56,940 bases of DNA, taken from positions 1-56,940 of the forward strand of contig JAAOMT010000467.1 in assembly GCA_016748015.1 (NCBI GenBank), written 5' to 3'. The notes below the pieces were generated by a model. That model searched no databases, was not told the DNA's origin, and worked only from the letters and a program-made list of their open reading frames with translations. Positions 1 through 54,900 of this stretch are shown here, in pieces (the first letter of the stretch is position 1; each line of letters starts with the position of its first letter). The translations under genes were made by a program, and so were the position numbers. Source of the stretch: Geosiphon pyriformis uo1. Its lineage: Eukaryota; Fungi; Glomeromycota.

Positions 1-176
1 GTATTTTGGTTAGAATAGACATTGCCACCGACCAAATTTATTTTATGTAGGGCGTCGACATTAATTATTTGGTGAGAAAAACCAGGCTTCTGCGTTGCCT
101 CTTCCTGGGTCAAAACAGGTAGGTCGAGGATTTTTGAAAGGCCAGCAGCCAAAAGTAGTGCGTTATAGCTTGACAT
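1..176 (-). CDS. 5' end of a Ubl-ART family paralogue (copy 1), running off the left edge of the window
   Basis: ATG at 176 (- strand) reads [58 protein letters not shown] with no stop. It is colinear with the N-terminus of the 1363..2340 gene, and its upstream DNA (177..~397) matches 2341..~2540. The Ubl and ART parts lie outside the window and are inferred. Confidence 0.8.
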   Translation of the reverse strand, partial: MSSYNALLLAAGLSKILDLPVLTQEEATQKPGFSHQIINVDALHKINLVGGNVYSNQN

Positions 177-519
177 TTTTTTAAATGAAAGCTAAGTAAG
201 AGTGTAAGAACTGGAAAAAGGCAGAAGCACCAATATTTTCTTTAAATACTTTTACTTTGTTTAAAAGACCGCAGTCATAGGCATTTATTAATAAATCCAA
301 TGAACAAGATTATTTCCTGAATTGAGGTTTTGTTGGAAAGCTCATATCACACATCGCTGTACGCCCACATATTATTTCCTTATCACTTTACCTTACTACG
401 GTTATAGATCGATAGCTTGCTTAATCAGTATTTTTTTAATATGACTTCATTAATGAAAAAAAACGTATATCACTAGGTCACATAACCCTTTATTTTTTAT
501 AACTTCTTTAACACGTTTT

Positions 520-930
520 AACATCGAGTCAATAAATCGAGCAATGGAAGTGCATTCTACGTAAAAGACTGCCTTCTCCAATTAATCCTCTGTTCCTTGC
601 TTTCGGTTTTGGAGAATCCAATTTTTAACTTTCCTTCACATATTTTCTATTGGCGATTATAAAGTCACAAAACCAAGATTATCTTGGAGATCTTTCACAA
701 GTTTGCACTTGTACATTGGAGTGTTTTTTTCCTGAAATATTGCTTTTTCAGCGGTCATAATCATTGGATAAATTATACGACCAGTTTGATTAGAATTGTG
801 AAGCTCACTTTTATGACACCATATACGAAATTTTGCATACGAATCAGTGCTTATAGAGGATTTAACTGTCGAAAGAATAAGTCGCCAATCCTTTTTGGTC
901 CAATGCATAATCTTTGCGGCAGACATATCT
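520..930 (-). mobile_element. Decayed Tc1/mariner transposase fragment
   Basis: The - strand gives HWTKKDWRLILSTVKSS (cf. WTxxDWxxVxFSDES), FQEKNTPMYKCKLVKD (cf. FQQDNAPxH) and SPIENI (cf. LxPIENLW). It is internally deleted and the catalytic acidic residues are degraded. Confidence 0.6.
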
Positions 931-1362
931 TATTTTGAAATAATCGTTTTAATTTTGTGTAGCCCCGGAGTACATATATTATAAAGTTTGTTTTGAAAGA
1001 ATATATATTGAAATAATGAAGTTTTGTTTAACAAGGCTATCCCACATTCACCAGATTCACCGATTCAAAATATCTAAAATATTACTATAATTAATTCCAA
1101 TTTGTCTTTTAATATAATTCTTGAATTGTTAAGAGTCGGTGAATTTCCATAGTTTTCCAAAATAAATTTTATTATCTTGCATAATATGAATTTTTATTAA
1201 AAAGCAAAAATTTAAAACTACTATCATTGAGCTTTTGGTAGATAAACAATACAACATAGGAGAAATATTTCATATTTGGTAAAAAAACTAATAATTTAGA
1301 AGCTAACATTATAAATAGTGTTTCCTCATCCAATAAAGAAAGCCAAAATTAAATCGCTGTCA

Positions 1363-2340
1363 TCATAGTCTCTTGATGCAGATACCATATGCGCGGATAT
1401 CTTCGTTTTGGGATGATATCCAATATTCACCAAGACCTGTTTTTTCCCGGGGGATGCGAGCAAGTGTTGCGGGATTGACTCTATTCTGCACAACAATACT
1501 ATATTGAATGCCTTTAAAGGTGAACTTTTCGGCATATAACTCGGCAACCTTTATATCAGGGGTTGAATAGATTCCATGGCCAAACATGAATCGTTTTCCT
1601 TTACTCAACAAATACCCCTCTTCGGCAATTGATTTTGCATTATGTTTACCAGTTCCATGGTAAGAAACGGGCCAAGCAGTTGAAGAGACTCCAAGCCATT
1701 CATTATCCAACCCATATTTATCTGACACTTTCAATGCAATTCGGTTCCAACCACATGGACGAACATAGGGTAACACTCCTCGAGTGAAACTCCTAGTATC
1801 TTTAATATTGGTAAAGTCAAAGTCGAATTGTGGATCTAAGCAGTTAGAACTGATAACATGAATACTGGGATTAGCATAACCACCACGAATACGCAACATG
1901 AGATGGACTGTACTCTCTCGTTGAATATCATACTCAGCCACGGTGTGGTCATCTTCAAGTTGTTTTCCAGCAAAAATAAGGCGTTGTTGATCTAGGGGGA
2001 TACCTTCCTTTGCTGCGATCTTTTGTTTTAGGTAATCAATAGTATCGCTCGAGTTAACCTCAATAGTTACAGTCTTTCCAGTCAGGGTCTTGACAAAGAC
2101 TTGATGAGTACTAGCAGTTTCAGTCGAGCCTACTTTGTAGATTGGTCTTGATTGATGATTGGCAATAGCCTTTTCAGAATAAATATTACCACCAACCAAA
2201 CTTATTTTATGTAAGGCGTCGAGGTCAATTATTTTGCGAGAAAACCCAGCCTTCTTCTTAGCATCTTCCTGGGTCAAAACAGCTTGGTTAAGAATTTTTG
2301 AAAGGCCAGCAGCCAAAAGTAGTGCGTTATTGCTTGACAT
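1363..2340 (-). CDS. Ubiquitin-like domain + PARP/NEURL4-type ADP-ribosyltransferase fusion (copy 2), single exon, 325 aa
   Basis: The start is placed at MSSNNALL (ATG at 2340), matching both paralogues. The Ubl at 2106..1879 is about 55/76 identical to yeast ubiquitin by hand alignment and ends LMLRIRGG. The C-terminal domain has [29 protein letters not shown], a Tyr 11 residues later and GEYWI, i.e. the ARTD/PARP H-Y-(Y)-E layout. Confidence 0.9.
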
Positions 2341-3321
2341 TTTTTTAAATAGAAGTTCAGTGATAATGTAAGAACTGGAAAAAGGCAGAAGCAGCAATAT
2401 CTTCTTTAAATACTTTTACTTTGTTTAAAAGACCTTAGTTACACGGTTAGAACCATTTATCAATGAGTCTAATAAGGTTTTTGTGGAAAGTTAATATCAC
2501 AACTCGCCACATATCTTTTCTTTGTCATTTTACCTTATACAGTGATTCTACTTTTCATGTAACATTAAAATTCTGATGCTAAGATTTCTTTTTGGGAGTT
2601 ATGATTCAAAACCTCAACTCTTGTGAAATATTGGGAACATGATTTTGAAACGATGCAAACTTCAGTTATTTATTCCGCTATTTATGGGTTTTGTTTTGCC
2701 AAGCTCGAATAAATACAAAAACTTGACCAAATTCAAATTTTTTCTGATAATTTTCACTATGAAAGTATCAAGTGAACTCGGTCTATAAAAGTTAATAAAG
2801 CATAAAATGAAAAGATTTTTTTGTGCCGAATTATACGGTACAATTAATCAATTCTTTAATGGAAAATTTCACAGCAATAATTATTTTTTATTTAAGAAAA
2901 GATTCAAGATAAATTTATATATCCGGGTGGTTGGTCGTGCGTTGTAAAAAGTGTAAGCCTTGCCTAAAGTTTAACTTTTTAGGGGTAGGAACAATTTAGG
3001 TACTAAGTGTGACTACACTTTAGAATGAGTTTTTACTTTTTTCGTCATTCTAAATTTCCTTGGCTTTTATTAGATGTTTTCCATCAAAATTGGATATAAT
3101 GCGGGGAATGGTTGTTAGAATAATTAGGAGAAAATTATTTAGATTTTTCAAACTAAAAATTCCTATCAATATACATCTACTCAATCGTATCTCATTGTTC
3201 AGAAAATACTTTTGGTTGACCGAAAAAAAATAAAGCAATATACAATGAGAAAGAAATAATATTTTCGAAATTTTTATAATTTACAAAAGAAAAGACGCGT
3301 GATGAAAAGGATAAAGATAAA

Positions 3322-4892
3322 TTAGTGATCCTTAATAATGCCATTTGTTCTAATAACTTGGAAAACCTCATATTCTTCCACCTGGAACGTATCAGTACTT
3401 TGACGAATCGCTTGTTCATAATCACTTTGTCGAGCCTGAGATAATTTGGATTCTCGGAAATCATTACCCAACAAGCTTAGGTCACCATCACCCCAAATGG
3501 GTCCATGTTTCTTGTGACATTTCATAGCCTGACTTGAATTAGAAACAAGGCTACAACAACTATTACCAAGTTCGTTTTCATCCATTGAGAAAATAAAGCT
3601 GTCAGTTGATCGTTCAAATCCCGAATGAGAATTCCAACTATAAGGATTGTAGCCACCGATTATTTCGTTAGTTCCTCGTACTCTTATTACCGTCAAAGTT
3701 GGACCTTTTTTATCGCAAAGACGATGAAACGAGGCTGGGGTGAAACCATCACGACTTCCACGAAGCAAAAGTCTAAATTCAAACGGATTGGTAACGAAAT
3801 GTCGTTGAATATCTTTTTGGTCGATCCAAATAGCCACTAGCGCCGCATTTTTGATATTAATTAAGACCGAATCAATGTGACTTGGTTTCATGTTCATTAT
3901 AAGCCAATTCCACAATCCAAGCCGTGGAGGTAAAATCGGCGATTCGATTTTATTACTCTCATTGGGGTGAAGATGATGGATTACCACATCACGAAATAAT
4001 CGCCGAGGAATGATTTTTTTGAATGGAACAACATTCCTATCAAAATCTTCAGATGATATTTGAAAATATCGAATATGGGGCAAGAGTTTTTGAAGGATTT
4101 TTTGTAAAGTCCCGAATTCATACTTTCCCCATTGAGAACCGGCCAAAGTGGAAGGTGGCATTTGAGAGAATCCCCATTCCATTATACGTGTCCATATATC
4201 AATTTCGTCTATTGCAAGGTCGTCGCGAATGAGCAACGATACGAGCATGTCTTCATCGAGAGCTGAAAAGTCTTTTGACATGAAAATCGTTTCTGGATGT
4301 TTGTCTTTGATCATTGTGATGAAATTCTGAAGTGCCAAGAAAGCTTCATGTTGAAAGGCGATTCTGTGAACAAGCGCAAAATTCTCACGTATCCAGTCAG
4401 CCTTTTCAGATATGAGATGATCTTGTAAATAGCCGAATAAATCTTCAAGGCCAAGTTCGTCAGCGGCAATCAAGATATCAAAGATTTCAGCAGTATCATA
4501 TTTTATCAGGCAAATCATACCACCATATATATAGCTATTAGAAAAGTAACGGAATGAAAAATAGCTGTTTAGAACCTTTTTCTTGATTATAAAGAAAATT
4601 TTGATATTATAATAAGAAAAAGTGAAATGATTTACCGTAGAATAACCCCAAAAACGAAGGGAGAAATGTTTGGCTTTTTGAAAAAAATCATATTTGCCCC
4701 CTGAGTTCTTGCCCACTCATTGCTCAACGCCGTTGCAAAATACTTTGAACGGGATCGTAATATCAAAGAATGAGCTTTATAAGTTTGGCTTTTATCACCT
4801 TCCCCTACTTCAATTGAAACATCATGATCCCGAGCGTTATCGAGAAGTTTCGTAAAATCTCTTGATAAAAAGGTTAAAAAATCGAGTGCCAT
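3322..4892 (-). CDS. BTB/POZ-BACK-TLDc domain protein, 2 exons (4892..4636, 4534..3322), 489 aa
   Basis: Exon 1 has the BTB start DVSIEVGE..YKAHSLILRSRSKYFATALS. A GT-AG phase-2 intron at 4635..4535 joins VILR to YIYGG. BACK-like LLIRDDLAIDEIDIW; TLDc motifs LLLRGSRDGF, FHRLCDKKGPT, IIGGYNP, GPIWG, FQVEEYEVF. Confidence 0.92.
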
Positions 4893-14106: not shown

Positions 14107-15636
14107 ATGGAAAACAATTTGTTGTTATCTCTTGTCGCGGACCTAACATCAGCTTTGCAAAACTCAAATCATCATGATGTTGAAATTGAAATTGGTGAAC
14201 AACCAACTATAAAAATTTTCAAAGCTCATTCTATAATTCTTGCTGCCAGATGCCCATATTTCTCTGCGGCTCTCTCAAAATTTTGGGTCAAAAGAGAATC
14301 AAAAATCATTACAATGACGAAACCGAATATCAAACCAGAAATTTTCGAGGAAATTATCAAGTAATTTTTATACTTTGATATTTTATCTCGTGGGTTTTAA
14401 TAAATTTCCCCAATCTCAATATTAAATGTGTGAATATCTTCAATATTTTATGAATCCATCCCAAAAAGATATATATACACTGCAAAAATTTCCATACAAT
14501 ATTTAGAAGTGGAGTGTGTTATAGATATTTTGATGGCTGCTGACGAGCTTTTACTCGATGAATTGGCTGTCTACCTGCAAACGTACATGGTTACTCATCG
14601 ATCTGAAGATTTAAACCAAAAATTTAATTTGGTTAACCAGGTTGCTTTCAGCGTTGGCTCACTAGATATTCTGCAGAAATATTGCACAGATTTTGCTTGT
14701 AAAAACTCTGAGCTATTGTTTGAGTCTATCGAGTTTTATTCTTGGAAAGAAGCCGCTCTGATTTCGCTTCTCAAGCGTGATGATCTAAGAATGGAAGAAT
14801 CATACATATGGGATAAAGTTGTATCCTGGGCTATTGAAAATGCAGGTTTATTAAAAAATTTTAAGGATTGGTCTCCAGAGGATATTCAAAAATTGCAAAT
14901 CACTTTATGCAACGTTATTCCCTTGATCCGATTTAACCTGATGTCTTCTTCCGAGTTTTTCTTCAATGTGAATCCAATTTCTTTAGCTTTGCCTCAAAAT
15001 TTATTCCAAGAACTGCTAGAATTTTACCTGGTGCCAGGATCTGAAAAACTTTTTACATCACCGCCACGTCAAAGAAAATTTAATTCGAAATTTGATTCAA
15101 AAATTATTAACGAAATACAAACATGTTGGATTGAATGGTGGATTAGCGGCAGCAATGAAACATCAAAGATGCCAAAAAAGGAAAATAAGTTCAACAAAAA
15201 ATTCGAACTTCTTCTTCGTGGCTCTCAAGATGGCTTTAACACGAGCGATTTTCATCGTTTATGTGATAATCAAGGTCCAACGGTTATCGTGATCAAAATT
15301 AAGGGAACTAATGAAATCATTGGTGGTTATGCTTCTGCTGATTGGAAATCAAACAACCAATTTGGATTTGCCAAGGATTCGTTCCTGTTTGCTTTTAGAA
15401 TCAATGATGATCAAAAAATTATCCTGAGTCGACTGAAATTGGATTCACGGCTGGCACTTGGTTTTGATCGAACTAATTGCCCATGGTTTGGAAGTCCTGG
15501 TGATTTGAAAATGGCAGGAAATTTTCAATTAGATTGTGCGTGCTATTGCAGAAGGGGTGCATATGAACTTGAAATTAGATCAACTACCGCATGTTTTTCT
15601 GTTGATGAATATGAAGTATTTAAAGTATTATCGTGA
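14107..15636 (+). CDS. BTB/POZ-BACK-TLDc domain protein, 2 exons (14107..14360, 14469..15636), 473 aa
   Basis: DVEIEIGE..FKAHSIILAARCPYFSAALS; GT-AG phase-2 intron 14361..14468 before YIYT; LLKRDDLRMEESYIW; LLLRGSQDGF, FHRLCDNQGPT, IIGGY, FSVDEYEVF. Confidence 0.92.
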
Positions 15637-15899: not shown

Positions 15900-18800
15900 A
15901 TGTATTTAAGCAGCTATATTATTGATTTTATAAACTATTGTTAAAGGTTTAACACTCTCAATATATCTATTTCTTTTATAACAATAACTTTACGAAATAT
16001 GAAAATTTTTCAAAAGAGAAATTAATCATTAAAATATTAAAGAAGAAAAAGGTTTTTAATTGCACATAGATTTAAAATTCTGAATTGACAAGAACCACAT
16101 TTTATGATTAGATTTTTATTAGATTTTATTTTCACTGATAAACAATAATAAATTAAACTGAAACATCAAAATTACAATAAGTTATAAACAAATATTAATG
16201 ATAATGAATGGACTAATTTTTTTAACTTAGCACAATTAATCTAATATGAAATAAAATGTTTTCTTGAATGTAGTTCTTTTACAATCTACTTTATACATTC
16301 AATAATAAACATAAATTACATGCTTTTTATATATAGCTAGTCATCTAAATTAGTTAAAATTATATTATACTAAAACATCAGTATTTACAATCATATTACT
16401 TATATATTCCTTAACTTTACAGACACTAACAACTTTTTTTTATCATACTAATAAACAGTAAAACTATTAAAATCTACAAAATATTCAGCCAATAATTAAG
16501 TTAATATATTTAATAAAACACATATGTGCTTTAACTTTAAATAAAATTGTTTAATCATTTTTTAATTTACTTGTTTAAAAAACTTTAAAATTAATTAGTT
16601 TTTAAATATATGTTTTCTAATTATAATTAAAGCAAAAAATAAAAAAGACGGATTGATAAAGAAGCTCATACCCCCGAAGAAATTCAAAAATTTTTAGCTG
16701 ATATTCCCACTCAAAGAAATAACAATTACTTTAAAAAAAATAACAACCCAAAAAGATTTTTCAATAATAAAAACAACTAAAAAAATTATTGTAAAAGTAT
16801 TTTCTTAAATATTTTAATTGCAAACCAATTTTTGACTGTTTTAGTAATATTTTTTTTAGTTAATAATATTTTTTAGCCAAAATATTATTAATTATACACA
16901 CTAAAAGTAGATTTAATGTTGTTATAATTATTGTAAAAAATTCTAAAATTTTAACAATAAATTATTAATTAAGTTACTGTTACTTTTATTATTATTTTAA
17001 GTAATTTTAAAAAACCTGAAAAGCACAAAAGGTAATAAAAAGACCAGTTTAAAATTTACAAGTTAAGAAATTTATGATTAAACAATCAGCTCAAAATATT
17101 ACAAACTTTAAAAAAACTCAATATAAATGCCAATTTGTATTTGTTTAAAAGTTTTTAGATCATATAAAAAAAAAATGATAGATTACATTATTAAAAAAAT
17201 TTAAAAACAAACCAAATTTTAATTTCAAGCTTTTTTAAATTAAAGTATCTTACTTATTATATACAATATTAAAAATAAAATCAAACTAAATTCTATAATT
17301 AATAATAAAATAAAATATTACCAAGACCAAATACAGAAATTGCTTATCAAAAATAGTTTTTTTTAATATTTTACTTGCAAAAAATTTAATATTTATATAA
17401 ATTTTTATTAATTTAAGCTTAGATAAATTTTTTAGTAATAGAATAATATTATAAATTAATTATTAAAATATAATTTATTTTAAATAATATCTTATAATTA
17501 TATAGTTTAAATATAAAATTTTTTATACTATGTAAATTAATAAGCAATAAAGTAGTAATAATAATAATAATAATAATAATATATATAATAACAGAAAAAA
17601 ATTATTAATTATTAATAAAATTTATGTTTTTGTTTAATAATTTTATTTTTATTATTTATTTTGTTTAAATAATTTTTGATAAATTTAATTATAGATGTTT
17701 TTTTTTATTTTTTTATTTGTGAATTATATTATTTGAATTAATTAATTTTTTTATAAGTAGATAATTTTATAATATTTAAAATTAATTATAATATTTATTA
17801 AATTTATTATAAAAAGTACTTTTATATTTAAATAATATTTTAAAAAAACTAATAAAAAATTTATTTAATAAAATAATCTATATTTAAATTTAAATAAATT
17901 AATTAAAAATAAATTATTATTATTTAAAAAAATATAAATATTAAAATTATATAAAATATTTATTGTTTTTTTTTGTTTTATATTTAAGTTAAGATATTAC
18001 ACCAAAAATATTTAAAATTAATTAATGTTTTAAATTATGTTATTATTATTAATATTAATATTAAGTTAAGCTTTTTAGTAAGTTTAATATATATTTATGT
18101 TTTTTTTATATTATTATTAATTTGTTGTTATAATTCTTAAAATTATAAATTAGCTAGTTATTTAATACTATTAATTATTATTATGCTTATTATTAGATTT
18201 AATAGTATTTTATAATAATTTTTAAAAGCTTTAAAAAATTTTATAAACAGTTTTTAAGTAAAATATATTTTTAATTTTTCTTATAAAGTTTTTTAATTGC
18301 TGTATTATTGTTTTATTAAATATTTTAGTTAGATTTTTTAAGTATAATATTTATATATTTAAGTTAATAATAATAATAATTAATTAAAAATAAAATTTTC
18401 AAGTTTTTAAACATAATTAATATTAAATTTATATTTATTTATTTTATTATTAATCTATTATTTAATGCTATTTTTAAATTTTTATTAATAAATTTGTTAT
18501 TGTATTTGAAAGTAATTATATATGATTTAAAACTATATTTTTTTTACTTTAAAGTTTTTTATTATTCTTTTTTTATTTAAATTTAATATAATAGATTAAG
18601 TTAAATAATCTAAATTAAATATATTTTATGTATTTTTTATATATAATTAAATATAAATTTACTATTGTTAAGATGAATTTATAATGTTGTTTTGGTTGGC
18701 TTAAGTAACTAGTCATATATAGAAAAATGTATAATTCACACTTAGTTTAGATTACTTAATTTAATATATTATATTAAAAAAAATATGAATTTAATTTAAA

Positions 18801-21800
18801 TTAAATTATATTAAGTTTATAAAAAAAATTTATTTTAAAAAAACATTTTATATATAATTGTAATTAATATATTATTGTTAATAATAATACTATTTATTTA
18901 TTTAGTAGTTTTATTTATATTTAACTTAATATTAGCAAATTAATACTTTTAAAAAGTTATTTATTAAGTATAGATATTTTTTTTTTTTTTTATTAAAGTT
19001 TAATGAGTAAAGTCCAAATGTTACCTAGTACTATATATCATTCAAATGATCTAAACTAGGTGCGAATCATGCCTTTGCTACACGTGACCAGACACTTAGA
19101 CTAGTCAGAACAACACTATACACTTATATAAACAGAAGCCATATTACTAACACCTGCATAAAACAAACAACACTTACGATATTCAAAACTGATGCCAAGT
19201 GCATCAGCAACTCCTAACAACCTAACCACTCCAGCTGAAAGTCATGCAGAAAAACCAGAAACAATAACAGGAATGGAACCATTACGTGGAATCAACTTAT
19301 TCTTCTCCATAATGGCCCGGTGTTTCATATGGACCAGCCAGATATTATCACGAAATGCAAGACAAAATTCACGTACAAAATTTACAATATTAACCACTGC
19401 CACCTTAGGATCCTTGTAAACAGAAACAGACTTGTGATACCAATCACCAAAAACAAAGTCCTTACACAAGGCCGTACTGACAGTCATGTTTGAAATGCAA
19501 GTTAACAACAATTGTAATATGCACGAAAAAGAATGAAACAGACCAGAATACACTAGATATTTTTATTTAAAAATATTATTAAAACTATTTATATAATTAA
19601 TTTTATTATTAACTAATTTTTTGCTAATATTATTTAAAGTTTTATTAAAAATAAATATTTTATTTTGAATTATAGCAACTATATTGTTTAATTTTTTATG
19701 TAAAGCAAAAAAAATATTTAACAAAATAATTATTAAAGTAACTAATTTACTAATTAATTTAATAGTAAACTTAATTATTAAAGCCAAAACATTCTACCTA
19801 AATTCCAAAAAAACCAAGCAAAAACCAATTAGAAAATCATTAATAACAATAATAGCAATAGGTAAAAATCTAATAATAAATAAATTTAAAAAAACAAAAA
19901 CAAAAGCTATAATATAAAATTTAGTTTCAACAAAATCTAAAATTTTTAAGAAAAGCACTAAATTAAAAAATAAAGTTAAGAGAAAAAAAACAACAATATT
20001 TTATAATTTAAAGTCAAATATTTTGACATTTAAAACACCACTAACATTTAAATGTTTTTTATCAAATACAATATTTTTTTAAAATATTAGTTTTAATATA
20101 ATAATATTCAAATTATTTTTAAAACAAAAAGTAATAATTACATATTAAAACTGTTTAGTGAAATTGAAAAAATAAAAAATAAAACAAATATAATTACCAA
20201 TTTGAAAAACCAGCTTGTTAATTTTAAAACCTAAACAGTTAAAAAATAATTAATTAATTTGGTCTTAAATATATTATAAAAAAAATAGTTTTTTTTAATT
20301 TATAAAATAAAATTTTTTAATATTGTCTTTGCTTATTAATATATTAAAGCAACTGTAACTATAATATAAAATTTAAAATATATAATAATATGTTATTAAA
20401 TGCCAGCTGATTAAAAAAAAACTTCAAATATTTTATTATAAATATTAAAAATTGTTTTAATATTAGTTGTAAATATATTTAAAAACATATTAAACAGAAC
20501 AATAACAATAAAAAAAGAAAGAAATTTAGATATTATTATAAATTTAGTAATCTTAAAAATAGAAAAAAAACAGAACTTTTAGCTTAAAATACAGTATTTA
20601 AAAAAACTTGAAAAACAAACTCTATATAAAAAAGCTTCATATTGTTTTTAAACAAAAACTTAGCATTAATAAATTTTAGACTAAAAAACAGTCTTAATAA
20701 AAGCTAATTTAATTTTAAAATAAACATTAAGCATTAAAGTAGTAGTTACTTATTTAGTAAATCTTTGATAATTAATAATTGTTTTTTAAATATTATTAAA
20801 AACAGCATTAAAAAACAAAAAAAAAGTAGTTAATTTAGTTTTTTTCTAGTTGGCTTAATTTTTAAGATTAAGTTATCTAATAAACTAATTTATTAAAGAT
20901 ATATTCAAAAACATATTTTGTTTTGTTTTAGAATTACAACAAATTTTTCAAATTAGTTTAAACAATTACAATTATATTTTTTAAAATATATTAAAAACAA
21001 TTAAATTTGGCAAAAACATTTAATTGCTATTTTTAATAATTTTATTTCTAAAAGTTTTAAAAAATTGGAAATAATGTTTTTTAATTTTTTATTTAAATTA
21101 CTGTATAAAATAACTGGATAACTCTGTATTTTTAATTTTGCAAAATTATTGAACATTAATTCTCACAAACAATTTACACTTTTATTAAAACTGTATTTAT
21201 ATTAAAAAATTTTAACCAATTTATTAGTAAATATACAAAATATTATTAACCAGTTCTTAATTAATGAAGAAAAAATTTAACAAATATTCTTAATTTTATT
21301 ACTTGTTTTTGTTAAAAAATCTGATTTTGTGCTATTTACCAAAAAAATTGATACTATGTTTAAAAAATTAAAATTTAGCTAACAGTATAATAATTATAAA
21401 TTCAATATTAGGTTTTTTGAATTAACTAATTTATTAACAATTTATAAATGTTGTTAATACTAAACTGCTATAAAAATTAGTAAGAGTTTATTTGAATAAT
21501 ATCAATATTTCTTTGAATTTTATCTTTAATATTTTAAAAATTATAAAAGTAAAATTTAAACTTAATATTGAAAAATATTTATTTTAATAAAAAAATTTTG
21601 ACAGATTTTGATTATAAGATAAAATCAAACCAAAATTTAAAAATATATTACATTTCAGTTTCCTAAATCACAATTGAACTTAAATTTAACTTTTTATTTT
21701 AATAAAATGTGTATATATATATTGGCAATTTGGAAAAAATAATTTAAATACAGTCATTTACATTAAAAATTTTACTTTAATTAAAAAATATATTATAACA

Positions 21801-22780
21801 ACAATTGTTTTTAACAATCAACAATATCAAAATTAAAAAACTAATTTAACGCATAATAATAAGTTTAAATACTATTACCAAAAATTCATTTTAAACTTTT
21901 GATTTTTTAAATTAGTACACAATTTTCTCAAAATATTTTACAAGACTTTGAATTAATACTTTAGAATTAAGAAAAATCTTCTTAAAAACAACAAAAACAG
22001 TAATAAAAATATTTTTTTTGCTTTTTAACATAATTATTCCAAAAATTAATGACAACTTTGAAAACAAATTTTGAATTTTTTATTACAATTAGTGAAATTT
22101 AAAATAAATATGATTAGAAAAAAGATGGTTTTTTTAGGCTACATTTACTGGTACTTTTTAAAAAAAAATTACAATGTTCACATTTCTAAAAATGTAATAA
22201 TTTAACAAAAACTTCAAAAGTGTTTTGATAAGTAAACAGCAATTGTATTTCATTTTATATATTTTTTTACATTATAAAATCAAACAAATAGATACTGGAA
22301 CTTCAAGCAACAAATCTTGCTCTAAAAGTTGTTAAAAGACAAATTTATAAAAAATTCAAGACTTTAGCTAAACCAAACTAATGCCTACTGCAAAACTCTT
22401 TGACCTAACACATTGGAAACTTTACGGAACTAAAATTTTAAACAATTTTCAACAAATTAAGTCTAAAAATTACAAACAATATTTTGACTTTAACAGAACT
22501 TAATCTTAAAAAAAATTATGTTATCAATCGAGATTTAAATCATAAATTAACATACTTCTAATTACTAGCTTAGCATTAAATAATTTTTTTTTTTAAATTA
22601 TTAGTTAGTTAAAATAATTATTATTTTAAAAATTTCTTGCAAAACAATTTGATTCCATTCAACATTGGTTACTTAAGTCACTAGTGAATAAACACTGTTA
22701 TATTCAAAATAAATAAAGTATCTTTGTTTTAAATAATTTATTTAATTTAACATTGAATGTTCAAGGTTTTAATATTATTC
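15900..22780. repeat. Extremely AT-rich tract of decayed, probably transposon-derived DNA
   Basis: About 7 kb with no credible intact ORF and very few CG dinucleotides. It contains a LINE-like 3' end and a segment also found inverted near 53800. Boundaries are approximate. Confidence 0.6.
18977..19560 (-). mobile_element. 3' end of a non-LTR (LINE-like) retrotransposon with poly(A) tail, 5'-truncated or decayed
   Basis: The - strand frame LCKDFVFGDW...FVREFCLAFRDNIWLVHMKHRAIMEK...FSA*LSAGVVRLLGVADALG...VYISV stops at 19118..19116, with one internal TGA at 19244..19242. About 125 nt of 3' UTR follow, then A15 (T-run 18977..18991). IW..(R)..HR resembles the post-zinc-finger C-terminus of LINE ORF2. 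No RT domain seen. Confidence 0.65.
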
Positions 22781-22793
22781 TATAAAAAGTTTT

Positions 22794-23051
22794 TCTTTAA
22801 TTTAATCTAATTTAATTTTTTCATAAATTTAGTTAATTTTGCTTAATTATTAAACTTAAATTATTTTTTAGCTTATACTTATCAAGTTTTTGGTTTTGGA
22901 TAGCATATTTTTAAGTTGATTCTTTAATTTAATCTAATTTAATTTAATTTTTCATAAATTTAGTTAATTTTGCTTAATTATTAAACTTAAATTATTTTTT
23001 AGCTTATACTTATCAAGTTTTTGGTTTTGGATAGCATATTTTTAAGTTGAT
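22794..23051. repeat. Near-perfect tandem duplication, ~127-131 bp unit, covering the HMG gene stop codon and 3' UTR
   Basis: 22794..22920 and 22921..23051 both read tctttaatttaatctaatttaa...ggttttggatagcatatttttaagttgat. Confidence 0.92.
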
Positions 23052-23983
23052 TGATCATTTAAACACGAAAAGAAGGAATCTATTTGAGGGGTGGTCATTT
23101 CCAAAAATTGTTCGTGCTCTTGATAGGGAAGAATATAGTGTTCATATGGGTTTTGTATATGTTGTAAATTTATTTTTTCAGGAATCAAAAATTGGTTTGA
23201 GTCCCACGAATCATTTGTGTTATTTAAATTTATAGATTGTTGTAACTCCATTGAAAAATCATGTTCATAAAGTATTAATGAATTCAGGGAAAAGGTATCA
23301 AAATCAGAATAAGTAAAATCATTTGTTCCTTGCAAGTACGGTATTAATATTTGAGTGGTGCTAGTATTAATTAGGTCAGAATGGCTTTCTGAGGCGTCCA
23401 AACAAAAATTTGAAGAGTCATGCGAGATATTCAGCCGATCATCCGAAATTGTATTCAAATAACAAAAATTATCCAAAATAGGTTGTTTTAATGTTGTCTG
23501 AATGAGGGATAGACTCTCTTTCCTTTTATACTCATTTTTCTTAAGATTCATATGTTTTAATGGTAGATTTTTACGCTTTTTTACATGGTATGGAATCCAA
23601 GAATGCTCAACAAATTCTAGGGATTTCATTCGAGCCTCGGTTATCAATTTTGCATTTTGCCGAGCTAATTTTTTATAACAGTCTTTAACTTCTTTAGGCT
23701 CTCGCCTCCACGCTTCCGCAACCTTAGATGAAATTTGGGTCATGCTAGGCTTCAACCCACGTTTTTTTATTTCCTTTATATACTCAAGACGATATATGAT
23801 GAAACTATTTGAGGGTTTTTTCTTTTTTATAGCCATTTTTCGTAATTTTTCCGTAGTAATCTCAGAAGGTAAAGGAAATTTGATTCCAAAATCTTGAAAT
23901 TTATCCGAGCTTGAAACATTTCGAGGGGTTAAAGAGTTTTGAATTGGAGTTTCTTTAATATTTGGAATCCCAAGGTTTGACAT
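23042..23983 (-). CDS. MATA-type HMG-box transcription factor, single exon, 313 aa
   Basis: KKPSNSFIIYR...SMTQISSKVAEAWRREPKEVKDCYKKLA is a sequence-specific HMG box (PxNxFxxYR, IS, W, Y), followed by a basic patch and an acidic low-complexity C-terminus. Confidence 0.9.
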   Translation of the reverse strand: MSNLGIPNIKETPIQNSLTPRNVSSSDKFQDFGIKFPLPSEITTEKLRKMAIKKKKPSNSFIIYRLEYIKEIKKRGLKPSMTQISSKVAEAWRREPKEVKDCYKKLARQNAKLITEARMKSLEFVEHSWIPYHVKKRKNLPLKHMNLKKNEYKRKESLSLIQTTLKQPILDNFCYLNTISDDRLNISHDSSNFCLDASESHSDLINTSTTQILIPYLQGTNDFTYSDFDTFSLNSLILYEHDFSMELQQSINLNNTNDSWDSNQFLIPEKINLQHIQNPYEHYILPYQEHEQFLEMTTPQIDSFFSCLNDQST

Positions 23984-29290: not shown

Positions 29291-30172
29291 ATGTATCTTT
29301 CGAAATTCTTTTTCAAAATTATGATCACTTTAAATCTCGCATTGACATCGTATAACATTGTCAATGCAGCTCCAGCTCCATCACCACCAGACGGCTCAAC
29401 AACATGGACAGTTGGGGAAAAAGTAACAATTGCGTGGGGTGAAAATGCAGACTTACCACAAACCAAGGATATGTCTGGAATTACAATCACCTTAATGACA
29501 GGGGCCGATTTGGCTCAAATTCCATTGGATGTGATTGCATCAGGATTAAAAGTTTCAACCAAATCAGTAGATTATGTTGTTCCACCATTGTCAAAATTGG
29601 GATATCCGGCGGGAAAAATTTATTTCATAATGTTTTCGAGTTCGACAAATCCTTCTTCAGGTGTTAGTTGGTCAACTAGGTTTATTATTGTTGATGGAAA
29701 AACCCCTACAGTCACTTATGACAAGGGTGAACCATTCACGTTTTCACGTAAGTTTCCCCATAGACATCTTGAGATTCGATCTTTTTCTATTTAAAATATT
29801 TCATAAGATAATCGAAATATGTTTCTTTCTTTAATACTAGGATCCCAGGGAAGTTCGGCTCCAACTTCGGGAGTAACAACTAGTGACGGTGGCGGAATTA
29901 CTGTGACAATACCTGAAAAAACCACTGCAATTTCTACCACATCATCAACAACGACTTCAACTTCATCATCTACTACATCTACTACTTCGTCAGAAACTAC
30001 GACAACAGATTCATCGACAGCCAGTGTCGTAACCGTATTTGAGGATTCACAGCCAACAGAACAAGTTTCCACAAATAAAAATTCAGCGGCGAAAACAAAA
30101 TTCAATTCCAGCTGGATTTTCGTGTCATCATTTTTAATCGTATCAGTGATTAGTCATATTGCATTTATTTAA
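29291..30172 (+). CDS. Secreted Ser/Thr-rich GPI-anchored cell-surface protein with Kre9/Knh1-like N-terminal domain, 2 exons (29291..29747, 29841..30172), 262 aa
   Basis: N-terminal signal peptide (..YNIVNA|AP); P.....W.VG..VTIAW, ITLMTG, VPP, YFIMF, WSTRF pattern. GTAAGT donor at 29748 and TAG acceptor at 29840 are in phase. S/T stalk; NSAA followed by a hydrophobic C-terminus (GPI signal). Confidence 0.85.
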
Positions 30173-31169: not shown

Positions 31170-31714
31170 CTACAACTCAATCGTCGTCATTATCTTCATC
31201 TTTTTGATACAGATACCATATGGGCGAATATCATGGTCTTCAGGTGATATCCAATATTCACCGCTACCTGTCCTTTCTTTAGGGATGCGAAAAAGGGTCG
31301 TGGGATTGACTCTATTCTGCAAAACAACCATATATTCACTACCTTCGTGAATGAAGGTTCTGGCGTGTAACTCGGCAATCTTTATATCAGGGGTTGAATA
31401 GATTCCATGGCCAAACCCGAATCGTTTTCCTTTACTCAACAAATATCCCTCTTCGGCAATAGATTTTGCATTATGTTTACCAGTTCCATGGTAAGAAACG
31501 GGCCAAGCAGTTGAAGAAACCCCAAGCCATTCATTATCAAACCCATACTTATCTAAAACTTTCAGTGCAAATCGGTTCCAACCACATGGACGAAGATAGG
31601 GAAACCCTCCACGAGTGAAGGTTATAGTATCTTTAATGTTTGTAAAGTCAAAGTGGAATCGCGGATCTAAGCAGTGGGGGCTCATAAAAAAGATATTGCT
31701 ATCATTAATAATAA

Positions 31715-31780
<66 letters not shown>

Positions 31781-32219
31781 GAAGACGTAACATTAGATGG
31801 CAGGTACTGTCTTTCTGAATATCATAGTGAGCCAGTATGTGGTCATCCTCAAGTTCTTTTCCACGATTAATAAGGCGTTGTTGATCTACGGGGATATTTT
31901 CAATTGCCTGGATCTTTTTCTTCAGATCTCCAACGGTATCGTTATTCAAGTCAACATTCATGCTCAAAGTTTTTCCAAACAAGCACTGGACATTAATTAT
32001 TCCTCTTCTCTGAGAAGTTTTATCATTTTTGGTAGAATACCACCCACCACGAGCTAGTGTAAGTTGATGCAAAGCTTCCATATTAATTTGTCGCGATTCA
32101 TATGGATGAACTTGCGTTGAAGTAATTTTCTTTGTAGCCGCCTCTTCATTGATCAACACATGTTGATCAAGAATTCTTGAAATACCTGCAGACAATAGCC
32201 ATAGGTCATTATCAGACAT
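31170..32219 (-). CDS. Ubiquitin-like domain + PARP/NEURL4-type ADP-ribosyltransferase fusion (copy 3), single exon, 349 aa, poly-Ser linker
   Basis: Homologous leader [22 protein letters not shown]; diverged Ubl ending LMLRLRGG; [42 protein letters not shown]. Confidence 0.9.
31716..31769 (-). repeat. In-frame (AGT)18 microsatellite encoding poly-Ser
   Basis: Pure act repeat on the + strand, directly after RLRGGG in copy 3. Confidence 0.92.
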
Positions 32220-32809: not shown

Positions 32810-34225
32810 TCATAAATATCCTTCCATTCCAAGCTCGCAATTTCCCATCGTGATTCCAAAATATGGTCCTCGATGCGCTTCTTCAGTTTCAATAACTGAT
32901 CCGCGTTGCCCTGAATTGCATTCCTGATATTTAAATATCAAAGTAATATCTTATTTTTAAATTTCACCAGAATCGTCAAGATTTAAGTTAATAAAAATGC
33001 CTACTGGATTCTCGCCGTGTTTACGTTGATCCGGAACTGGACAGATAAAAACTTGATATTTTTCAATATCATCGCACTCACAGATTTGTTTTGGTATCCA
33101 AAATTCTGTCCCATGATGCCTGAATCCGAGAAATGGATATTTTGGAAGATGTAATCGCGGCACACTATCATTTGCATGAGTAACGCGTGCTATTGTCATA
33201 TTGAAGTGGTTAACGATTAGGGCAAAGTTTTCAACCCCAATACGTGGTTGCCCAAATGTTGCAACTATTGGAATAACTTTCCAGAGCTCAGTATTTTCTC
33301 GAGCTAATTCGTTATGCATTGCTAATGCTGCCATAACTGCGTATGCTATTGATTTTTTTCCAAAGGATTGGTTAAAAATTTATTATGGGTGAATTATTTA
33401 GACCAATTGGGAAAATATTAATTGAAAATCTAGAAACCTTAGTCATATACTTTATCCTGTTACCTACCACCACCAATTCCATGACCGATAAAAAAAACTG
33501 GAATCTTTTGTTCATCCCTTTTTGATACCAAATTTATTAATCGACGAAATAAATCTGGTATTATATATCTCATATCTGTATACCATTCATTGTCCACAAG
33601 AATGTTACGATGTTGCTTATAAGATAGGCCGAACTCAAACTGTTTCAATACACTCTTTCGCCGATTCCATTGTTTTGTGGTGTATTCTGGTCCCTTGAAG
33701 TATGCACTTATTTCTTGTGTATGGGGATCTACATAAAGGTCCCCTGACACGGAATTTGATTAAAATATTAGCGTCAATTTGAGCATTTGGGAATAAATTC
33801 AATTTGAATTAGAATTTACCAAATTTTCCAAATGGTAAATTTCCAATGAATCGCCGAGAATCACAATAAGGTAAATTTGCGATTTTTGCCATTTTCGATA
33901 GGAAAATTTTATCCTGTAGACTGGCTAATCTTTTTGGTGGATATTTTTCGAATGCTGTAAATAAACTATGTACCCTCTTGATATTTTCTCCCATTTTTGT
34001 TTTATCTTCAGGCATATCATCACTTGAATATTCTTTGCGATAACTTGTAGACAACCTCCGAACAGAGGAAGTTTCAGATGTAGATTTTTTCGCCCAAAAT
34101 ATTGGTGAATATCCTTGAGTGTCATTGTATGAATTTTTATCATTTATTGAACCGATCGTATTTGACCGAAATATTATATATGTTATGATAGAGATGATTG
34201 CTAGAAAGGGTAATAAGTGACACAT
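32810..34225 (-). CDS. Secreted class-3 lipase-like protein lacking the catalytic Ser, 4 exons (34225..33820, 33743..33468, 33345..33005, 32923..32810), 378 aa
   Basis: Signal/anchor peptide; AYFKG; FFIGHGIGGAYA (elbow, normally GHSLGGA); TFGQPRIG, RVTHANDSVPRL, GFRHHGTEFWI, ENPECN, HRGPYFG. Three GT-AG introns, all in phase (1137 nt). Confidence 0.88.
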
Positions 34226-36571: not shown

Positions 36572-38699
36572 GATAATTCGGATTTTTTAAAATATTTAAT
36601 ATAAATGATTTTTCATATCGAGAGAATATTACGGAAATGACCACATGCTAAAAGTATTTTATTGTTAAACTATATGATCAATCAAACGAATATGAATATT
36701 TAGTTGTAGTTTCATTTGATGAATAGATTTTCTCATGATGCATCTACAATATAATCTTGAAATGAAAACTTGAAATCTCTGTGGGAAGGCGAAAGATCTT
36801 TTAGCAAATTATTCATTTATTAATGAAAAAGCAAAAAAAAGATATATCAATAGAAATTAAATTCGAATTCCAGTTTTGGCTTTGATTAGGTCATAGGCAT
36901 GCGAAATGAGAGCAGAAAAGATTGAATTGTTCAATTTCGTATAAAGTCCTCAGAATTTTAAGATCAAGGCTATCCTATTGAGAGATATTTTGTTGCGTGC
37001 TCTTAAACATAATAGATAAACAAAAGAAAAGCTTTAGTAATTGCACATAATTATGTTTAAGTGACTTTGCTTTTCTTCGGACAAATAAACAATTTATTTT
37101 AAATAAAAAATATATAAATTAATCAAAAAAGTTTCTTTTAATTTAAATGAACAAAACTTTTTATTTTTATATCATTTGCAATTTTAAGAAGTGACTTTTG
37201 TAAATTGCCCTTGGATAAATATTTATCGCAGGTTTGTTGCCCTTATCGTGCTCCTCAGTTCCCTTACGATTCTTTAAACTGTACTCTTCCAAGACTCCTA
37301 TTTGTAGACTTATAATAAATCTCTCGAGCTCAACGATTCAAAATGGAATAAGGGAGATAATTAATATCAGCATCCATTGTGAGCTTTAATTCATTTAAAC
37401 CTTCTGATGGAATTTCTTCTTTTTTCGCTGTTGTTTCGATCATGTTCAAATATTTATTTTTAGAACGAGAGACGATAAATATTCCACATATCACATGTCA
37501 TTATAAACACATAATCGAGTGAATCCTTATCCCGTCATTAATTAATTAACAAATATAATTTGAAAAAGGTGTGTTCATAAATTTTATTGTCGCAACTTGT
37601 TTATTTCCAAAATATTCGATTTCGGCATCATATTTTATTAATTTCTTCATCTACCCATATAGATTTATAGATTTAAATTCTTTATATTTTGCTAACTGCT
37701 TCATTCCTTGAAATTTCCTTGTAAACTTCTAAAATGATGCTTTGAACGCTTTCTAGACTTGTCACAATTAGGAATTTATTAATAAATTCTTTTCTTTGGG
37801 AATTTATCCTTGTGACCATCCCCCTTCTTTCTATAAAGCAAATTGAAATAGATTTTATCGAATATAGTTTTAAATTCAATTTGAACTTTTGAAAGATAAA
37901 GTTTCTTTTTAAAAAATTTTATTCACAACTTGACCTTATATTTCTATGAGTAAAGGATTAATTTGACTATTTTCTCCTTAGCCTTAAAACTTCTTATAAA
38001 CAACTTTTTTTAATACTCTAACTATAGATGATATACTTAATTTTAGAACCTCTTGCTTTAATTTGATTTATGGTCCAATTAATTAAAATTGGCCAACTTA
38101 TCAAATAATCCGAAAGAAGCCGTGAATAGATTTTATAAATGATTGACATTTTTTCATTATTAAAATAAAAGCTTTATTATTATTATAAAAATTAGTTGAA
38201 TACAAAGTCATTTTAATCAGTTGCTTATAGGTATAAGTTTTTATAAAGGTCGAAGGATAATTAAAATCTCAAATTCGGAAATTTTTAAAATAGAATTGGT
38301 TTTGTACTACAATTAATTACTTGCGAACTAAAAATTATTTTTAAATTTCAATTGAAAATTTATATTAAGTTTAATCACTCTTTTAAAGACCCAAGTAGTT
38401 TAAAAAATTTGCTGAATTTTCAGAAAACTATTTAAATCCATTGAATAAATTAAAATAAGTTATTGTTTTTTCAAAAACCATATTTTCTTGAAATTCTATT
38501 TTTATTTAATAGGAATTTTAATTTAAAATTTAATTCAAATAATACATTTACTACGTTTATTTAATAAATAATTTTACTATTTTTTCATTGAATCTATTCA
38601 AAAGAAATATTAATTTGTTAATAATATTGATCTTCTTTCTTTGACCTTATTTTCGAAAAATAAAAAAAATAAAATAAAAAAAATTAATACCATATTTAT

Positions 38700-41100
38700 C
38701 AATAAAGTAATAAATATTTGGAAAAAATATTCTTGATTGAATTGTTCTTAAAAATATAAACAACATAATGTTTTACGATATTAAACCACCAAAATTAATA
38801 TATATTGTTATGGTTAAAACTTTTAGTTTTTAGTTATATTGATTATCCAATTATATTTATTCACATGTATTAGCTACCATATTTTTAGAATAAGTTATTA
38901 ATGTAATTTTTGACTTGATCAAAAACTTGATTATTGACTTAGTCATTAATTTGGACATTGATTTTATTATTGACCTAATTATTAACCAAATCATTGATGT
39001 AATTACTGACTTGATTATCGAGAATATATAAATAAGATTTCCTAAAGCTATAGAAATTCATTCCAAACTAGAATTATTTCCTTAGTTACAAGATTAATAA
39101 AATAATTTCAACTTACTTATGTTCATAATACTATTATTTTTCTTTTTTTTATTTGTATATTATTAGCTTTTATAAAGCATATTGAATAAATGTTTACTGA
39201 AAAGTACAAACAATATCTGCTATTGAATTATAAGAGTGCTAACATGATTCATATAATTATAGCAGCTGTGTTATTCTTTTGTTAACAGTATAAACTATCT
39301 TTCAACTTTTAGATTCTTTTATTACTTTTGGAAAGAATAATAACTGAGATATTTAAAAAACTGATCTTGTATATTAAATTCCTAAACTTTTTTTAGTTGA
39401 ATTTTCTTTTGATTTTTTTTTGTTATACAATATTTGTTTTACTTTGTTATCTATTAATGTGTTATTGTGATTTGTAATAATATATATATTATTATACTTT
39501 ACTGAATATAATTTAATCACTATTTATAAGTTACAGCATATATATATATTTAAACATAAATGTGAATATGCACTTTTTACACATAATTACTTGAATCAAT
39601 TAAAACTAGACCCATTACAATTTTTTAATTAAAAACTGAATTTGTTACATTAAGTTTTCTTAGTTTTTGTTATATTTTAAAGCAAAATTTAATACGTTTA
39701 TTAAAGCATATTGTATTATTTAACAGTTTACAAATGTGAACAAATAATATATAGCTTTAAAACAATATAATTTTATTATTATTTAATACACCAGAATTTT
39801 AATTTAGTTTTTATTAATAAATTAGCTTATAACCGGTTCAAGTCTTTCCACAATTATGCTATACAACTGGTTAAATCAGCCATTATTATAACCAAACTCT
39901 GAATTTGTATTTCAAAATAAGATAAGTCTTTTTTTTAAAAAAAATACCACAAGTGCGTGGCAAATTGATTAACAGTTTAAGCATATCAAATTAAATCAAA
40001 CAATTGGTTAAAATAATATGTTTTAAAATTAGAAGAAATAATTTATAGATTAAAAACAACTAATTGAAATTTTAACATTATAATAGTACTAAGAACCAAG
40101 AATTTTTACAAAATATGACTTTTAAAAAAATTCCAGTTTTAATAACAGCTAGCTTAAAAGCTTTCTGGTTTTTTGAACAATAATTTTTTTCTAATTTAAA
40201 ATAGGAATTTTAATAGTATTTATATAAAAATTAATTAATAAATCAGAGTTATATTAGCTGAAACTAAGTTTTTGAGATAAACCATAACATATTACCACAA
40301 ACCAGTTGTCTAAGTTGAGAACAAAGTTATTGTTTGCTTTCGAATTGAAATTTATTGTTAATATTAAGATGGGTGAAACAAGAGTGATAAAAAAGTTAAA
40401 ACTTCATTTTTTTAAAATCCAAGCTGGGTTCATAAATACTGGTTACAGAATCAAGATTTTCAAAAAATACAAAATTGCTGCTTTCTGGTAAATGAAAGAA
40501 GAAACAATTTTCAAGAATAACAAAGAAAATGGTTGTTATTTTCTTTAGTTATAATTGCAAAAATAATGGTTGTTTTTTTTTTGCTCTGATTGTGAATTTA
40601 AAAACAATTTAATTATTTATATAAATTATTAAAAATGCTGTTTAATTAAAAAATTGAAAAACTATTCTAAACATATTAAATTAACTTAAAAAATATAATT
40701 ATAAAACAAGTTATAATACAGCATTTAGCTAGATGCTTGTCAAAATAAAACCAAAAAATCTTTAAATTTGGTATAAATAATTGAAATTTAAAACACTCAT
40801 AGAATTCAAACAGTTTAAAATTGAACACTATATAATAATTAAATTAAATTTTTTTTTCAAAGAATTAGTTTAATTTTATTGATTTTAAATTTGAATTCAT
40901 TTAATTTTTTTAATTTTAAACTAAAATGTTATTTAAGATTAATTATTTAATTCCTGTCTGAAATTAAAAAATGAATTTGTTTAAAAATGGCTTAAAATAA
41001 AATAAAAAAAAAAATTAATTCAATATCTGTTAAAACATCTTAAAGTCTTAATGAATTATTTATGTACTGTTGGTTTTTGTTCAAATTAAAATAATAATAA
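38700..41100. repeat. AT-rich, CG-depleted tract of decayed repeat DNA
   Basis: No credible ORF; same compositional signature as 15900..22780. Includes a degenerate 12-nt-period array at ~38905..39020. Boundaries are approximate. Confidence 0.45.
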
Positions 41101-54800: not shown

Positions 54801-54900
54801 AATTGGAACATAAAATTATAACAGCTATATTATCTTTTAATTACGATTACAAATTATTTTTACACTTTTCACGTTTCTCTTTTTAGAAATCGATATATTA
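51900..54900. repeat. AT-rich, CG-depleted tract of decayed repeat DNA
   Basis: No credible ORF; shares an inverted segment (core 53798..53816) with 16267..16285. Boundaries are approximate. Confidence 0.55.

Follow-up and report, generated by a model that had tools for sequence, protein, structure and literature searches.

The stretch of DNA analysed here, called the window throughout, comprises the 56,940 nt at the start of contig C49 (JAAOMT010000467.1, forward strand) of the AT-rich, 128 Mb genome of Geosiphon pyriformis. It carries three paralogous genes in which a ubiquitin domain is joined, in one open reading frame (ORF), to a predicted ADP-ribosyltransferase (ART) domain; we refer to these as Ub-ART genes. 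Two of them are complete: copy A (1363..2340, minus strand; ATG at 2340, stop codon at 1363-1365) encodes 325 residues plus stop, and copy B (31170..32219, minus strand, read from 32219 to 31170) encodes 349 residues plus stop. The third is represented by its first 58 codons (1..176, minus strand, ATG at 176), where it is truncated by the contig end, and is found complete on contig C659 as a 359-residue ORF. Beyond its architecture, its folds, the invariance of its site residues and its membership of a large uncharacterised family, all of which are established, we propose with moderate confidence, from sequence comparison and structural models, that copy A encodes an active cytosolic ADP-ribosyltransferase, probably a mono-transferase, that is made as a ubiquitin-fusion precursor.

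All three window copies lie on the minus strand in a single open frame without an intron. Over their whole length copies A and B share 56% identity, and as the E value of the alignment is 3e-141 their likeness cannot be put down to chance. The third copy, which has the same orientation as copy A and starts 1.19 kb downstream of it, forms a tandem pair with that gene. Contig C659 (1-4116) overlaps window positions 1-3212 in reverse complement, with 100% identity across the ART part of copy A, and extends beyond the window. Because this overlap is assembly redundancy, the copy counts of the genome search were lowered by one, giving a genome-wide total of four intact copies and two remnants. The fourth intact copy lies on C692 and has a ubiquitin without the RLRGG tail, while the remnants, on C572 and C606, are respectively a degenerate copy and a piece of a pseudogene interrupted by three stops. 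An initial annotation of this DNA had described three intronless paralogues (1..176 partial, 1363..2340 and 31170..32219), multi-copy and ordered leader, ubiquitin-like (Ubl) domain, linker and ART; each of the three ORFs, the order of domains in the copies and the multi-copy state agree with that description.

Residues 79-154 of copy A (1879..2106, minus strand) are certainly ubiquitin. They match PF00240 with an E value of 1e-29 and 102.5 bits (cut-off 25.4 bits), align without gaps to ubiquitin chains in the PDB and, in a full-length AlphaFold2 model (predicted local distance difference test score, pLDDT, 83.8; predicted template modelling score, pTM, 0.70), superpose on ubiquitin chains with a Z of 16.5, a root-mean-square deviation of ~1 Å and 68% identity. 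The domain ends in LRIRGG, followed by Tyr. The ubiquitin of copy B (residues 73-149; 31773-32003, minus strand; E 1.8e-18, 66.5 bits) has the tail LRLRGG, and the ubiquitin part is ~70% identical to canonical ubiquitin. Three of this genome's four intact copies keep the LRxRGG tail, and in these three the residue after Gly-Gly is Tyr, Gly or Asn and never Pro. Likewise, no Pro follows the Gly-Gly in the aligned relatives from fungi, rotifers, Hydra and Dictyostelium.

Ahead of the ubiquitin lies a leader (residues 1-50 of copy A; 2191..2340, minus strand), a conserved N-terminal helical module that is common to the fungal, rotifer, Hydra and Dictyostelium sequences. Its alignment is marked by the motif LLxAAxSAI, then an almost invariant His, then GG. 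In the copy A model the leader is predicted with a pLDDT of 88-93 as a helix (3-17), two strands (21-23 and 34-38) and a further helix (40-49), the overall order being helix-strand-helix-strand-helix, so that the N-terminus is a conserved, confidently modelled helix, and it has no basic n-region. A Pfam scan of the leader matched no family. A resemblance to a ubiquitin-interacting motif (UIM; LxxAxxxS) was considered and rejected, because the Ala-Ser spacing varies across the family. A complex prediction of leader residues 1-52 with ART residues 156-325 scored 0.01, in a run made without an alignment and with a partner whose own fold was uncertain in it, and so speaks neither for nor against contact between the two. 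Leader and ubiquitin are separated in copy A by a variable, disordered linker (residues 51-78; 2107..2190, minus strand; pLDDT 31-39), the length of which differs between paralogues. Copy B has in addition a poly-Ser linker of ~18 Ser between Gly-Gly-Gly and the ART domain (31698-31772, minus strand) that is not present in the other copies.

The C-terminal domain of copy A (residues 156-325; 1366..1875, minus strand) very probably has the ART fold, judging by its models, and is PARP-like in Foldseek, in VIA-align and, weakly, in Pfam. In copy B the domain runs from residue 175 (31173-31697, minus strand). It is a basic domain of ~165-170 residues, with an isoelectric point of 9.2 in copy A and a family median of 9.0. 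The initial annotation had suggested checking for an ART fold by a Foldseek search with an AlphaFold model, and such a search of the PDB with the ART model returned PARP catalytic or ART-type structures (PARP16, PARP3, PARP4, PARP12) in all of its top 21 rows, the best match being PARP16 (E 2.8e-3, probability 1.0). An exhaustive VIA-align comparison against 48,161 PDB representatives placed PARP-type ART folds at every one of ranks 1-17, namely PARP4, PARP3, PARP16, PARP1, PARP10, tankyrases, PARP2, PARP15, PARP13, SRO1, RCD1 and TASOR. These align over 106-138 residues with Z values of 4.9-6.9, in the range below 8 where matches can be non-specific, and are followed by exotoxin A, diphtheria toxin and other ART toxins at Z 3-3.6. 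As the Z values are middling, the fold call rests on the purity of the match list and not on any single score.

Other searches point in the same direction. The language-model neighbours of the ART domain are PARP clusters, and one relative carries the UniRef name 'PARP catalytic domain-containing protein'. A shape search of the ESM Atlas returned the family's own 731-member cluster together with relatives in which a phage ART, trypsin or TLDc domain is fused on; an Atlas search limited to named non-PARP clusters gave no match. By sequence, the only PDB matches of the domain are PARP16 and PARP10 (E 0.03-0.5), and the block that aligns is the NAD+ pocket, xHG[ST] ... FGxGxY ... Y. Sub-threshold Pfam matches were found among 38 relatives to PARP (34/38, best E 2.3e-5), DUF3990 (34/38) and ART-PolyVal (12/38). 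The PADLOC, NCBIfam and PHROGs profiles gave weak matches or none (best E for PADLOC, 8e-4), and matches to MBT repeat and septin profiles (E 0.6-1) were treated as noise. When the full-length model was used for the fold search, the list was filled by ubiquitin folds and was silent on the ART part.

The predicted active site is strongly conserved. Residue counts here and below are taken from an alignment of 109 full-length relatives with a single ubiquitin. The predicted NAD-binding His228 (in YHGT, residues 227-230; codon 1657..1659, minus strand) and the predicted NAD-stacking Tyr258 (in FGHGIY, residues 253-258, within GHGIYST; codon 1567..1569, minus strand) are both invariant (109/109), and HMMER aligns the former with the HG[ST] motif of PARP16 and PARP10 and the latter with GEGTY of PARP16. 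At the position of the predicted catalytic acid, Glu305 (in GEYW, residues 304-307; codon 1426..1428, minus strand), Glu occurs in 95/109 and Asp in 14/109. A second Tyr, 11 residues after the first (Tyr269 in copy A), is Tyr in 101/109, with copy B having the single His. The Tyr-Trp after the acid and a QxR motif are also invariant, and the domain has invariant motifs of the family's own, QNRVNP among them. The motifs YHGT, FGHGIY, the Tyr 11 residues on and GEYW, from which a PARP-like His-Tyr-acid site had been read previously, are thus all present in copy A, and the site holds across the family, with His and first Tyr invariant and the acid always Glu or Asp.

The conservation of these residues bears on the possibility that the domain has no catalytic activity and is a pseudo-PARP used for binding, in the manner of PARP13 or TASOR. 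PARP13, TASOR, RCD1 and SRO1 are indeed among the fold matches, copy B has its His in place of the second Tyr, and two members with several Ubl domains have Thr instead of the acid. Nevertheless, His, Tyr and acid are kept in all 109 single-ubiquitin members, the four copies of this genome included, and because the active-site residues are invariant we consider a dead enzyme highly improbable.

Several results tell against reading the domain as an active PARP-type enzyme and temper our confidence in it. In addition to the middling Z values, the copy A domain reaches 13-14.5 bits on Pfam PARP (PF00644; E 0.026-0.056), below the cut-off of 26.7 bits, and for copy B no match to this model is listed; the AlphaFold model of the ART domain alone has a pLDDT of 70. 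Glu305 is tentatively taken as the counterpart of PARP1 E988 because it is located at the start of the penultimate strand in the copy A model, a correspondence of fold position only. It also fits an ungapped register, E-Y...Y.I..K, with the NEYIVY motif of the PARP1-like gene of the same genome, with a score no better than that of shuffled sequences. When the family profile was compared by hhalign with the two exons of that gene, exon by exon, only YHGT/WHGS and FGxGIY/FDKGVY were paired, with no significant probability. The Thr at the acid position in the two multi-Ubl members belongs here as well. The PARP1-like gene itself is canonical (WGR ... HGS ... NEYIVY; C651:760154-760850, minus strand), with an intron just after the catalytic His, and further weak PARP-domain loci lie on C531, C771 and C701.

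As to the kind of activity, the domain would bind NAD+ and transfer ADP-ribose, probably as a mono-transferase. This seems more likely because the domain is small and is without the PARP regulatory or helical domain, in general a pointer to mono-transferases among PARPs; PARP3 and PARP4 both have an H-Y-E site and work as mono-transferases. A different argument had been made from the position of PARP1 K903, where the initial annotation read Val or Ile. These residues do occur there, the equivalent position (seven residues after the Tyr in an ungapped register) being Val, Ile, Thr, Leu or Cys in 109/109, but the step from this to mono- over poly-ADP-ribosylation is not an established test, and we know of no accepted use of a non-Lys residue here as a predictor of one over the other.

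On structural comparison, the closest solved relatives are PARP16, PARP4, PARP3 and PARP1. PARP16, of clade 6, gives the best sequence match in the PDB, with the HG[ST] ... G.G.Y ... Y block aligning ungapped to PARP16 residues 148-193. This family has its His-Tyr positions and a Tyr-Tyr spacing of 11 residues in common with the small PARP catalytic domains (PARP16, PARP3, PARP4, PARP10), but identity to these is 12-17% and the Ub-ART proteins have no helical regulatory domain or transmembrane tail. The stretch from the second Tyr to the acid is 36 residues here as against 81 in PARP1 (in the numbering of the initial annotation). Unlike the small PARPs, the domain always stands behind a leader and ubiquitin and has its own invariant motifs such as QNRVNP. 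The ART domain of NEURL4 (ARTD17) is described as having an H-Y-E[D-Q] site, distinct from classical PARPs, with the key residues 'HGS' and 'ELEW'; NEURL4 is reported to be a mitochondrial enzyme that carries out poly-ADP-ribosylation. When the published motifs are compared by eye, HGS and ELEW are loosely like YHGT and GEYW here, but NEURL4 has six NHR repeats and no ubiquitin, whereas ubiquitin is part of the Ub-ART family.

The family to which these copies belong is large. A word-indexed search found 614 relatives, or 1640 with a profile, and an exhaustive profile search returned 2559 representatives at 50% clustering (E <= 1e-3), 445 of them with E <= 1e-30. Members occur in all of the glomeromycotan genera that were sampled (Paraglomus, Ambispora, Acaulospora, Diversispora, Gigaspora, Scutellospora, Racocetra, Cetraspora, Dentiscutata, Entrophospora, Funneliformis, Glomus and Rhizophagus), with many copies per genome. 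The family had been introduced as a fungal one, a description that has to be widened: bdelloid rotifers (Rotaria, Adineta, Didymodactylos), Hydra vulgaris and Dictyostelium have it too, with DDB_G0280589 of Dictyostelium strain AX4 among the members, and these searches turned up no other named animal. Named members are annotated as 'hypothetical' or 'ubiquitin-like domain-containing', save the one PARP-named protein. Compared with their animal and amoeba relatives, the ART domains of this fungus show 55-64% identity. Tandem arrays are found in this window, in Dictyostelium AX4, where DDB_G0280589 is the one confirmed family member in a four-gene tandem array of ubiquitin-domain genes, and, going by gene numbering, in Paraglomus and Gigaspora.

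In every examined member with a complete N-terminus the order leader-(Ubl)n-ART is strict. Long relatives (P0147, P0164 and P0223) begin with the same leader and place four or five divergent Ubl domains between it and the ART domain; since these longer members keep the order, leader-(Ubl)n-ART is the unit that defines the family. One relative, P0122, has protein kinase domains besides ubiquitin and ART. A quick maximum-likelihood tree of 122 ART domains, for which the careful search is unfinished, contains a Dictyostelium clade (support 100), a second clade that unites rotifer, Hydra and metagenome sequences (support 99) and a number of old subfamilies within Glomeromycota. This genome's four copies form one clade (support 81) and so arose by local duplication. 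The family is thus old in Glomeromycota and its spread among eukaryotes is patchy. In the tree, Hydra (P0044, P0077, P0092) and rotifer (P0089, P0096) ART domains are intermixed on short branches with many metagenome sequences alongside, and horizontal transfer or a shared mobile source is a possible explanation of this mixing.

The pattern of substitution and the gene structure of orthologues indicate that the Ub-ART copies are real genes under constraint. Between paralogues, the ratio of nonsynonymous to synonymous substitution rates (dN/dS) is 0.34-0.68 in the ART part, which is constrained, and 0.6-1.35 in the ubiquitin part, which evolves fast, as does the leader. The Rhizophagus and Rotaria orthologues each contain one intron. 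Only one public run (X1) holds related sequence, in the form of a single 1147-nt contig on the third copy that consists of its 1080-nt ORF with flanks of 21 nt ahead of the ATG and 36 nt past the stop, plus 10 letters without a match. This contig resembles a transcript; the run type is unrecorded and the tool guesses DNA, which tells against it as support for expression and makes it a hint only.

With an ART domain behind a ubiquitin, the question of what the ubiquitin does becomes central. In UBA52 (Ub-eL40), RPS27A (Ub-eS31) and polyubiquitin, likewise, a ubiquitin ending in LRxRGG is fused in frame to a further protein, and linear ubiquitin fusions with an LRLR-GG tail are cut quickly by deubiquitinases in eukaryotic cells. 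By analogy, we suggest that the Ub-ART protein would be made as a linear ubiquitin fusion and cut by deubiquitinases after Gly-Gly (between Gly154 and Tyr155 in copy A). The ART domain would thereby be set free, leaving behind a leader-tagged ubiquitin whose end can be conjugated, and the ubiquitin would act as a cis-chaperone and release switch. Because Gly-Gly is kept, the next residue is not Pro and linear fusions are known to be cut, we consider such cleavage the likeliest course for the products of copies A and B and of the third copy. Among the 109 relatives, G75 is conserved in 94/109, G76 in 92/109, R72 in 84/109 and R74 in 73/109.

Cleavage cannot, however, be the whole story. Gly-Gly is absent in ~15% of the members, including the C692 copy of this genome, and the members with several Ubl domains are without it ahead of the ART domain. 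Moreover, the ubiquitin is internal, behind a leader, where in classical ubiquitin fusions it is N-terminal: compared with UBA52 and RPS27A, it lies behind a leader of ~50 residues and a linker, the cargo is an enzyme and not a ribosomal protein, and the ~15% without Gly-Gly set the family apart. In members that lack Gly-Gly or have several Ubl domains, the enzyme would be kept tethered.

These exceptions suggest another role for the ubiquitin, namely an uncleaved, integral targeting domain of the Rad23 or Dsk2 kind that brings the ART domain to ubiquitin receptors or the proteasome, the components of which would be its substrates. The missing Gly-Gly of the C692 paralogue and of other members is what would be expected of such a domain, as are the multi-Ubl members without Gly-Gly before the ART domain and the strict leader-(Ubl)n-ART order, and the pTM of the full-length model hints at a fixed arrangement. 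Yet Gly-Gly is intact in 85% of the members, mostly behind a full LRLR tail, and the ubiquitin surface evolves fast, both in dN/dS and in single positions (I44 in 74/109, K48 in 55/109), which would be odd for a receptor-binding module. On balance, we think a permanent targeting domain rather unlikely.

Alternatively, the ubiquitin could be the substrate of the ART domain, whether its own or free ubiquitin, which would make the protein a eukaryote-encoded writer of ADP-ribosyl-ubiquitin comparable to SidE (acting on Arg42), CteC (Thr66) or DTX3L-PARP9 (Gly76). Ubiquitin and ART are linked throughout the family, connections between ADP-ribosylation and ubiquitin are known from published work, and the three acceptor positions are well represented (R42 in 91/109, T66 in 82/109, G76 in 92/109). 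Against this, the candidate acceptor residues are not invariant, unlike the ART site, and no direct evidence speaks for it; the complex prediction covered the leader and not the ubiquitin. SidE and CteC are bacterial R-S-E (cholera-toxin-like) enzymes, not of the H-Y-E type, and the site here is His-Tyr-acid rather than R-S-E. SidE, CteC, PARP9-DTX3L and PARP-Ubc also couple ADP-ribosylation with the ubiquitin system, but none of them does so in the leader-Ub-ART order. A role for ubiquitin as ART substrate therefore strikes us as decidedly unlikely. We see a similarly small chance that the fused ubiquitin is the enzyme's working partner in a broader sense, either ADP-ribosylated by the ART domain in a eukaryote-encoded version of what SidE and CteC do, or removed by a deubiquitinase cut that arms an NAD+-consuming immune or cell-death switch, in a pathway that mycorrhizal fungi, rotifers, Hydra and social amoebae would have in common.

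Our preferred reading of a mono-transferase released from a ubiquitin precursor leaves its biological role to be considered; this may be lineage-variable, with stress or conflict the most plausible settings. The initial annotation had gone further and proposed a conflict enzyme, that is a toxin, an immune or cell-death effector or the cargo of a selfish element, which the ubiquitin fusion would restrain until it is triggered. The patchy distribution over distant eukaryotes, the tandem arrays and many copies per glomeromycotan genome, the intermixed rotifer and Hydra sequences, the structural relatives fused to phage ART or trypsin domains and the fast evolution of the leader and ubiquitin parts would all fit such an enzyme. 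However, the neighbouring genes differ per taxon, and in the four taxa compared no conserved partner, transposon, viral, NLR-like or other defence gene adjoins the family; the PADLOC matches are weak, and an ART domain 55-64% identical between fungi and animals is unlike arms-race effectors. We therefore regard a dedicated conflict enzyme as unlikely. The specific claims of defence, cell death, control of endobacteria or effector delivery found no support, with neighbours that vary and no conserved partner, whereas the enzyme class and the coupling to ubiquitin are borne out by the ART fold, the H-Y-acid site and a Pfam-certain ubiquitin in one ORF. Separately, the idea that the genes are mobile-element cargo was rejected, no transposon or viral gene adjoining them in the four taxa.

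We found no description of the leader-ubiquitin-ART architecture in the full-text literature searched for the fusion, for glomeromycotan ARTs and for DDB_G0280589, although Aravind 2015 or de Souza and Aravind 2012 may mention it; the initial annotation, too, knew of no functional description in these fungi, and none was found in the searchable literature. Two eukaryote-wide PARP surveys list many links between PARPs and the ubiquitin system (UBCc, UBA, UIM, U-box), but not ubiquitin itself ahead of an ART domain. A 2026 survey of 534 fungal genomes recognised only PARP1 and PARP-Ubc, the latter a PARP6-like domain joined to an E2 domain and not to ubiquitin itself.

A PARP-like ART domain in a conserved leader-ubiquitin-ART architecture, with thousands of members and with no Pfam model and no paper found, is of interest for two reasons. 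How ADP-ribosylation and the ubiquitin system act on each other is under active study (Deltex and PARP9, SidE, CteC, ADP-ribose-ubiquitin hybrid marks), and here both are found in one polypeptide. For arbuscular mycorrhizal fungi, the family adds an expanded, unannotated set of enzymes. As members are present in the tractable Dictyostelium AX4 (DDB_G0280589 and its neighbours) and in Hydra, activity, processing and targets are directly testable.

The two complete copies of the window differ in an uneven way along their length. At the nucleotide level copies A and B are 96% identical in the catalytic core (window 1420-1760 versus 31250-31590), with 4 differences in 120 nt beneath 40 identical residues, and 58-67% identical in most of the leader and ubiquitin parts. 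In every paralogue pair the synonymous rate (dS) of the ART part is also several times below that of the leader. Given the high identity of the ART core and its low dS relative to the leader, the sequences suggest gene conversion between the ART cores of these paralogues, which lie 30 kb apart.

The remainder of the window is varied in content. Window positions 16001-22000, 38001-40000 and 52001-56000 have 14-20% G+C and no ORF of >=150 residues, and consist of extremely AT-rich intergenic or repeat DNA. BTB/BACK-TLDc genes lie directly upstream of copy A (3322-4716, minus strand) and at 14509-15636 (plus strand). These genes, the HMG-box gene named below and the nearest relatives of the Ub-ART protein are all in keeping with a glomeromycotan genome. 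The fold search of the Atlas also returned a cluster of TLDc proteins that carry an ART-shaped domain, which may be a coincidence, TLDc genes being numerous in these fungi. Between and beside the two Ub-ART loci sit an HMG-box gene (23042-23983, minus strand), a Kre9/KNH-domain gene (29291-29794, plus strand) that adjoins a Ser/Thr-rich ORF in another frame, and the exons of a class 3 lipase (32957-33750, minus strand).

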